A stretch of DNA of 64,000 nucleotides from Octopus bimaculoides (lineage: Eukaryota), in the NCBI RefSeq assembly GCF_001194135.2, contig NC_068984.1, positions 16,663,188-16,727,187 on the forward strand, in the 5' to 3' direction. Position 1 is the first letter of the stretch. Each line of letters opens with the position of its first letter. This document shows, in pieces, positions 1,220 to 63,389 of this stretch. The position numbers and the translations under genes are program-made. A model generated the notes under the pieces. It saw nothing but the letters and a program-made list of their open reading frames with translations. It was not told where the DNA came from and made no database searches.

Positions 1220-1319
1220 CTTCTGGAAATTGTACTAATGTCGGCCCTGTTGACAATGATATTGTGTTTTCCTATGGTATTAATGCCTGTTCCAATTGGG
1301 TTGAAATCGAAAGAATTCC
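1220..1319 (+). CDS. RELN: Reelin exon A (100 nt, phase 1 to 2)
   Basis: ttcag|CT..CC|gtaagt; [34 protein letters not shown], similar to human SGSC..IIVLYAKNNSADWIQLEKIR. The ORF track shows a different frame here. Confidence 0.88.

Positions 1320-63389: not shown

Follow-up and report, generated by a model that had tools for sequence, protein, structure and literature searches.

Results

Gene Model

The window (the whole stretch of DNA that was analysed, 64,000 nt) carries an ordered chain of 18 coding exons on its forward strand, has a GC content of 36%, and has multi-kilobase, microsatellite-rich introns. The exon search took all open segments bounded by AG...GT for each of the 18 exon sizes listed in the initial annotation, with the phase set by the preceding exons, and it yielded one ordered chain. 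Each exon was found once, in order, with an AG acceptor, a GT donor and continuous phases, and the listed sizes were all recovered on the forward strand as a single frame. The spliced exons comprise 3137 nt, or 1045 codons, without a stop. The splice dinucleotides were canonical in 36/36 cases; a pyrimidine-rich tract precedes every acceptor, and the donors are mostly GTAAGT or GTAA. The introns between the exons measure 0.7–7.9 kb and are rich in SINE-like and LINE debris. The exons are given below, together with their vertebrate RELN counterparts.

1220-1319, forward strand: exon 1, 100 nt, corresponding to vertebrate RELN exon 9; end of the N-terminal unique region, aligning to mouse reelin 6A48
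4055-4358, forward strand: exon 2, 304 nt versus 241 nt for vertebrate exon 10; contains the insertion 4164-4226, followed by CWAMDNV...WLFFPGA
6574-6725, forward strand: exon 3, 152 nt versus 146 nt for vertebrate exon 11; intron position as in toothfish
10663-10814, forward strand: exon 4, 152 nt, the same as vertebrate exon 12
15194-15306, forward strand: exon 5, 113 nt, the same as human exon 13, versus 116 nt in toothfish
19122-19342, forward strand: exon 6, 221 nt versus 209 nt for vertebrate exon 14; boundary into repeat 1, subrepeat A
23710-23838, forward strand: exon 7, 129 nt, the same as vertebrate exon 15; Asp-box STDHGLTW
24583-24689, forward strand: exon 8, 107 nt versus 110 nt for vertebrate exon 16; ends WALDN
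31023-31086, forward strand: exon 9, 64 nt versus 67 nt for vertebrate exon 17; first half of the repeat 1 EGF module
35209-35442, forward strand: exon 10, 234 nt, the same as vertebrate exon 18; remainder of the repeat 1 EGF module and start of subrepeat B
38615-38776, forward strand: exon 11, 162 nt, the same as vertebrate exon 19; Asp-box SCNGGITW
39664-39903, forward strand: exon 12, 240 nt versus 237 nt for vertebrate exon 20; passes from repeat 1 into repeat 2
47777-48076, forward strand: exon 13, 300 nt; corresponds to vertebrate exons 21 and 22 (193 + 113 nt) as one
52060-52197, forward strand: exon 14, 138 nt, the same as vertebrate exon 23; repeat 2 EGF module
54488-54671, forward strand: exon 15, 184 nt versus 187 nt for vertebrate exon 24
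58029-58234, forward strand: exon 16, 206 nt, the same as vertebrate exon 25; Asp-box STNAGISW
61880-62039, forward strand: exon 17, 160 nt versus 172 nt for vertebrate exon 26; end of repeat 2
63219-63389, forward strand: exon 18, 171 nt versus 201 nt for human exon 27 and 207 nt in toothfish; start of repeat 3

Exon 5 is the least conserved exon of the chain. It was the sole candidate of that size and phase that aligned colinearly, and its GTEKC aligns with GTEPC of Lingula.

The assembly contains six runs of N within the window, located in introns 6, 8, 12 (two runs), 13 and 14, with 1,089–5,327 nt separating each run from the closest exon. At the junctions concerned (6/7, 8/9, 12/13, 13/14 and 14/15), the protein alignments continue with no lost segment. 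A tblastn comparison of fish, turtle and Lingula reelin with the window, including positions 1-1219 and 63390-64000 and the flanks of the gaps, gave no match beyond the 18 exons. No coding exon is lost in the gaps. The 10-N gaps at 42440-42449 and 49407-49416 are followed immediately on the right by exact direct duplications of their left ends (51 nt and 41 nt, respectively), and they therefore represent unmerged contig overlaps in which a short stretch is duplicated and nothing is missing. The remaining gaps adjoin (TA)n or similar simple repeats.

Identity of the Encoded Protein

A phmmer search of the spliced protein against all PDB chains returned mouse reelin 6A48, which comprises the N-terminal region and repeat 1, as the best match (E = 3.3e-139), in a single colinear stretch (query residues 8-622, chain residues 83-672). 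Weaker matches to 3A7Q and 2E26 (repeats 5-6), 2DDU (repeat 3) and 7LYU were obtained as paralogous repeats. Pfam analysis identified six Reelin_subrepeat-B matches (E = 2.9e-164), two EGF_Teneurin matches and a BNR match. The encoded protein thus comprises the end of the reelin-specific N-terminal region, the complete repeats 1 and 2, each consisting of subrepeat A, an EGF module and subrepeat B, and the first part of repeat 3, in which the window ends. This represents ~30% of full-length reelin.

In a large protein collection, 13/13 relatives at E ≤ 1e-10 were reelin, reelin-like fragments or unnamed proteins with reelin domains; the collection apparently holds no proteins longer than ~1800 aa, which places full-length reelins outside this comparison. 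The best and sole relatives were reelins rather than any non-reelin protein. The highest identity was to the reelin-like protein of Lingula anatina (41% over 99% of the query), followed by the turtle Pelodiscus (39%), the teleost Poeciliopsis (39%) and Saccostrea (37%). No identical or near-identical transcriptome-derived fragment was present in the protein collection. The peptide of exons 1 and 2, when searched alone, gave no match because this region is too divergent for the word index, whereas the full 1045-aa query did find relatives.

Alignment with fish, turtle and Lingula reelin was colinear through repeat 2 and into repeat 3. All of the cysteines common to toothfish and turtle (31/31) are kept in the window protein, and also in Lingula. 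The window protein contains four Asp-boxes (S-x-D/N-x-G-x-x-W). In a neighbour-joining tree, it groups with that of the oyster Saccostrea, with a weak bootstrap value of 65%.

Exon Architecture Compared with Vertebrate RELN

The RELN locus of the Antarctic toothfish Dissostichus mawsoni (L003/L005), in which the exons were resolved exactly, served as the vertebrate reference. The toothfish exons measure 109, 241, 146, 152, 116, 209, 129, 110, 67, 234, 162, 237, 193, 113, 138, 187, 206, 172 and 207 nt. The 206-nt exon (exon 25) is 205 nt long in the assembly, which carries a 1-nt indel there, and the public toothfish model (P0009) stops at this indel (L005 ~28792). The human RELN exons 9-27 are given in the initial annotation as 97, 241, 146, 152, 113, 209, 129, 110, 67, 234, 162, 237, 193, 113, 138, 187, 206, 172 and 201 nt. 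The toothfish series differs from this human series by three in-frame changes and in no other respect.

The quoted human sizes were also compared with published variant positions. The variant c.1893-1G > A lies at the acceptor of intron 15, which makes c.1893 the first position of exon 16. In the same source (PMC13586675), c.821 belongs to exon 9 and c.1984 to exon 16, whereas c.2015 and c.2165 belong to exons 17 and 18, respectively; a second source (PMC9170683) assigns c.2689 to exon 20 and c.3477 to exon 25. Counted from c.1893, the quoted sizes give c.806-902 for exon 9 and c.3712-3912 for exon 27, and all of the anchors fit. The human exon sizes quoted in the initial annotation are thus matched by a real vertebrate locus and are compatible with the published human positions.

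Introns of the window were mapped to human RELN through the mouse chain (human residue = chain residue + 193, an offset fixed by Met662 and Pro672). For introns 1-11 of the window, codon and phase agree exactly with the human prediction. The window and human RELN have seven exon sizes in common, and the remaining differences are all multiples of 3. When the two spliced proteins were aligned with MAFFT, 16/17 internal introns of the window shared both column and phase with the toothfish. The outer splice borders at 1220 and 63389 also coincide with the toothfish; upstream, both the border of exon 1 and the intron that follows it lie at the toothfish position and phase, and, downstream, exon 18 ends in ...QFK|gt, as it does in fish. 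The chance expectation is ~18/3135 per intron by our own estimate, and 16/17 coincidences in position and phase, as read from the aligned proteins, cannot be chance. The seven identical sizes and agreeing phases that the initial annotation had reported were borne out, as was the alignment of the exon boundaries with vertebrate RELN.

The two structures differ at two places. Vertebrates have an extra phase-0 intron at HLVKE|ACLPG (193|113), a position that falls inside exon 13 of the window. The Lingula locus was examined for this intron and offered only the last two exons, which lie behind a 3.5-kb N gap. The other difference concerns intron 17, which interrupts DNFN|RLSD in the window and TLPQ|NFYE in the fish; the fish site lies three codons upstream, and the phase is the same. 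In Lingula, the intron at DDFE|RFNVYD coincides in position with window intron 17. The linker between repeats 2 and 3 around this intron is indel-rich and poorly aligned. The offset may represent either a 9-nt slide in vertebrates or a single intron with a shifted alignment.

The gene structure is common to the window and to vertebrate RELN, and it is therefore ancient. The intron positions and phases shared with vertebrate RELN support the view of the initial annotation that the structure was inherited from the bilaterian ancestor.

Exon 2 Insertion and N-t Cleavage Site

Exon 2 contains a predicted insertion of 21 aa (4164-4226), which appears to be lineage-specific, as it was seen in no other species compared; mouse, turtle, teleost and Lingula reelin are all without it, and so are the Saccostrea and Biomphalaria predictions. 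The 63-nt excess of exon 2 over vertebrate exon 10 equals the 21-aa gap in the alignment. The possibility that 4164-4226 represents a mini-intron was considered and rejected, as every in-frame GT..AG cuts conserved residues and the candidates are all too short. The insertion falls in a stretch equivalent to mouse residues ~333-340, which we take to be part of the CR-50 epitope region, involved in reelin self-assembly.

The N-t cleavage site of vertebrate reelin lies at mouse Pro1244-Ala1245 and is cut by ADAMTS-3 (PMC11808024). The Pro-Ala site (NFYEKP|AFDY in vertebrates) is absent at the start of exon 18 (63219-63245), where the window encodes NFNRLSDLY and Lingula has FERFNVYD. Vertebrates carry 14 extra residues around the cleavage site relative to the window protein and Lingula. 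As neither of these has a counterpart of the site, the ADAMTS-3 inactivation switch looks vertebrate-specific. The site is a vertebrate regulatory feature and does not define membership of the reelin family.

Intronic Repeats and Other Sequence

A SINE-like element is present in at least 14 intronic copies in both orientations. It contains an internal (TA)n/(TG)n microsatellite and has the structure ...GGCCGACCAAAGCCTTGTGAGTGGATTTGGTAGACGGAAACTGAAAGAAGCCCGTCG-(TA/TG)n-...GGCAAAAGAGACCGATAGAATAAGTACTAGGCTT... The copies include the following, among others.

7584-7674, reverse strand: SINE-like copy
19511-19810, forward strand: SINE-like copy
22237-22344, reverse strand: SINE-like copy
31398-31626, reverse strand: SINE-like copy
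36890-36988, forward strand: SINE-like copy
43474-43703, reverse strand: SINE-like copy
45479-45684, forward strand: SINE-like copy
53879-54074, reverse strand: SINE-like copy
61340-61548, forward strand: SINE-like copy
63923-64000, forward strand: SINE-like copy

We take this element to be a repeat that is ubiquitous in Octopus sequences. Among motifs of the putative Octopus consensus, a 29-mer had seven matches in the window and a 34-mer had five, versus none expected. A 61-mer exceeded the 3-mismatch limit; it matches 19741-19801 save for CpG-type transitions. The putative Octopus consensus matched the window repeat over more than 150 nt and, apart from CpG decay, predicted more than 100 further bases. 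Rfam and ARAGORN tRNA scans of the whole window gave no hits, and the SINE-like element has no detected tRNA-like part.

A LINE tail is present on the reverse strand of intron 2 (4782-5507), in two adjacent open segments, with a zf-RVT match below the Pfam cut-off (E = 5e-05). At the protein level, it shares 83% identity with a sequence on Logan contig SRR7158634_51531 and 64% with one in GCA_024449705.1; corals and a sea cucumber also have many related sequences. A second retrotransposon tail, of the LINE C-terminus type, lies in intron 13 (49609-49857, forward strand, and 49220-49400), just downstream of the gap of 10 N at 49407-49416. On the reverse strand, 18125-18487 and 42189-42515 are two intronic copies of a further repeat, with a common translated motif and no Pfam match. 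Long imperfect microsatellites of the (CA/TG)n and (TCTC/ACAC) types occupy 56559-57113 (forward), 8923-9354 (forward) and 20900-21200. The open reading frames of up to 185 aa within microsatellites (HTHTHT..., CVCVCV...) were considered spurious and not genes. A Pfam scan of the longest intronic open reading frames on both strands gave the sub-threshold zf-RVT match only, and there is thus no nested gene.

Discussion

Alternative Readings of the Locus

We considered whether the locus could be a non-functional or unexpressed copy, either a pseudogene or a decaying paralogue, that has retained reelin-like exons. Such a copy could account for the 21-aa insertion in exon 2, which is unsupported elsewhere, and for the poor conservation of exon 5. 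It would, however, have to have kept 1045 codons over 18 exons without a stop or frameshift, together with canonical dinucleotides at 36/36 splice borders, 31/31 structural cysteines and 4/4 Asp-boxes, and this degree of retention would be unexpected without selection. We regard a decaying copy as very improbable. The coding region is, rather, preserved and evidently constrained.

Faulty human sizes or chance could, in principle, also have produced the match in exon sizes, in which case the gene structures would not be homologous. The sizes quoted in the initial annotation did not come from data, and the boundary between exons 17 and 18 is off from that of the fish in the alignment. However, a real vertebrate RELN locus gives the quoted series, the human variant positions fit it, and 16/17 introns share column and phase. 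An artefactual or accidental origin of the match was rejected on the toothfish locus, the human anchors and the intron columns, and we consider its probability to be close to nil.

A further possibility is that the orthologue belongs to a lophotrochozoan other than a cephalopod, for instance a different class of mollusc, and that the large-brained lineage invoked by the initial annotation has no bearing on it. The protein is about equally similar to Lingula (41%), vertebrate (39%) and oyster (37%) reelin, and the bootstrap value of the mollusc grouping is no higher than 65%. On the other side, the abundant intronic repeat matches the putative Octopus consensus over more than 150 nt, and the GC content of 36% and the long, microsatellite-rich introns are in keeping with an octopod genome. 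We regard a non-cephalopod source as unlikely and an octopod source as probable.

On the preferred reading, to which we assign a probability of about 0.92, the window holds the middle-5′ part of a lophotrochozoan reelin (RELN) orthologue, and the source is most likely an octopod cephalopod. True orthology, as proposed in the initial annotation, is upheld by the relatives, which are all reelins, by the colinear alignment to mouse reelin and by the intron positions shared with vertebrate RELN.

Proposed Function and Significance

The full gene runs off both ends of the window and would be expected to encode a large, secreted, multi-repeat glycoprotein that forms multimers. By analogy with vertebrate reelin, the part encoded here may correspond to the scaffold, the multimerising N-terminal half. 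By the same analogy, the signal peptide and the Reeler domain would lie upstream of the window, and the rest of the eight repeats and the basic C-terminal region would lie downstream, including repeat 5 with its covalent dimer cysteine and repeat 6 with the lipoprotein-receptor site. The receptor-binding lysines in repeat 6 are presumably those at mouse K2360 and K2467. A full-length octopus reelin, conserved intron for intron, could putatively position migrating neurons of the brain via lipoprotein-receptor/Dab-type signalling, although we consider this proposal rather unlikely as it stands. If true, the cortical-layering pathway would be ancestral bilaterian equipment that was reused in an independently evolved large brain.

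The window gene is a conserved orthologue of an ordinary kind. Intron positions shared with vertebrates are a general pattern among intron-rich genes of lophotrochozoans, as was reportedly described by Raible et al. in 2005, and reelin-like genes have already been predicted in brachiopods and molluscs; the result is therefore expected and not surprising. The gene structure would date from the protostome-deuterostome ancestor, which means that the exon-intron layout of reelin would predate the split between the two lineages. This is worth stating because, as a 2026 paper still notes, reelin signalling was historically thought to be restricted to vertebrates, and parts of the literature still describe it as such (PMC12867693). 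No paper on a cephalopod reelin was found in the literature searched. The analysis provides a checked gene model for about one third of a mollusc reelin, probably that of an octopus, which can serve as a basis for expression and receptor-binding work in cephalopods.

Comparison with Known Systems

Vertebrate reelin (human NM_005045, mouse Reln; structures 6A48, 2DDU and 2E26/3A7Q) has the same domain order as the window protein over the region covered, at 39–41% identity, and its conserved cysteines and Asp-boxes are all found in the window protein. The likeness extends to the gene, with 16/17 internal introns and both flanking borders at the same position and phase and seven exon sizes identical. 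Vertebrate reelin differs in that it lacks the 21-aa insertion in exon 10, has exons 21 and 22 split and has the border of exons 26 and 27 three codons away. It also has the Pro-Ala N-t (ADAMTS-3) motif at the start of repeat 3, whereas the window protein does not.

Among the invertebrate proteins, the Lingula anatina reelin-like protein (P0003/P0012) shares with the window protein both the indel pattern of the linker between repeats 2 and 3 and the DDFE|RF intron. The Saccostrea cucullata reelin-like protein (P0011) groups weakly with the window protein. The Lingula, Saccostrea and Biomphalaria sequences are automatic predictions, consisting of split, partial models, and they are without the exon 2 insertion. 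Fragmentation is a feature of the public reelin models; the Lingula gene is divided between neighbouring models of 1289 aa and 2050 aa, and the 3.5-kb N gap lies upstream of them (L006 10001-10900). The reelin-like protein of Biomphalaria glabrata (XP_013064208.1) was detected in hemocytes, which is a non-neural context and the one mollusc observation at the protein level that was found.

The Reeler-domain proteins, which include F-spondin, Drosophila Drospondin and the reeler proteins of mollusc shell matrix, share with reelin only the name and the N-terminal Reeler domain. They are without reelin repeats, which form the whole coding content of the window, and this content rules out a Reeler-domain-type protein as the product of the window gene.
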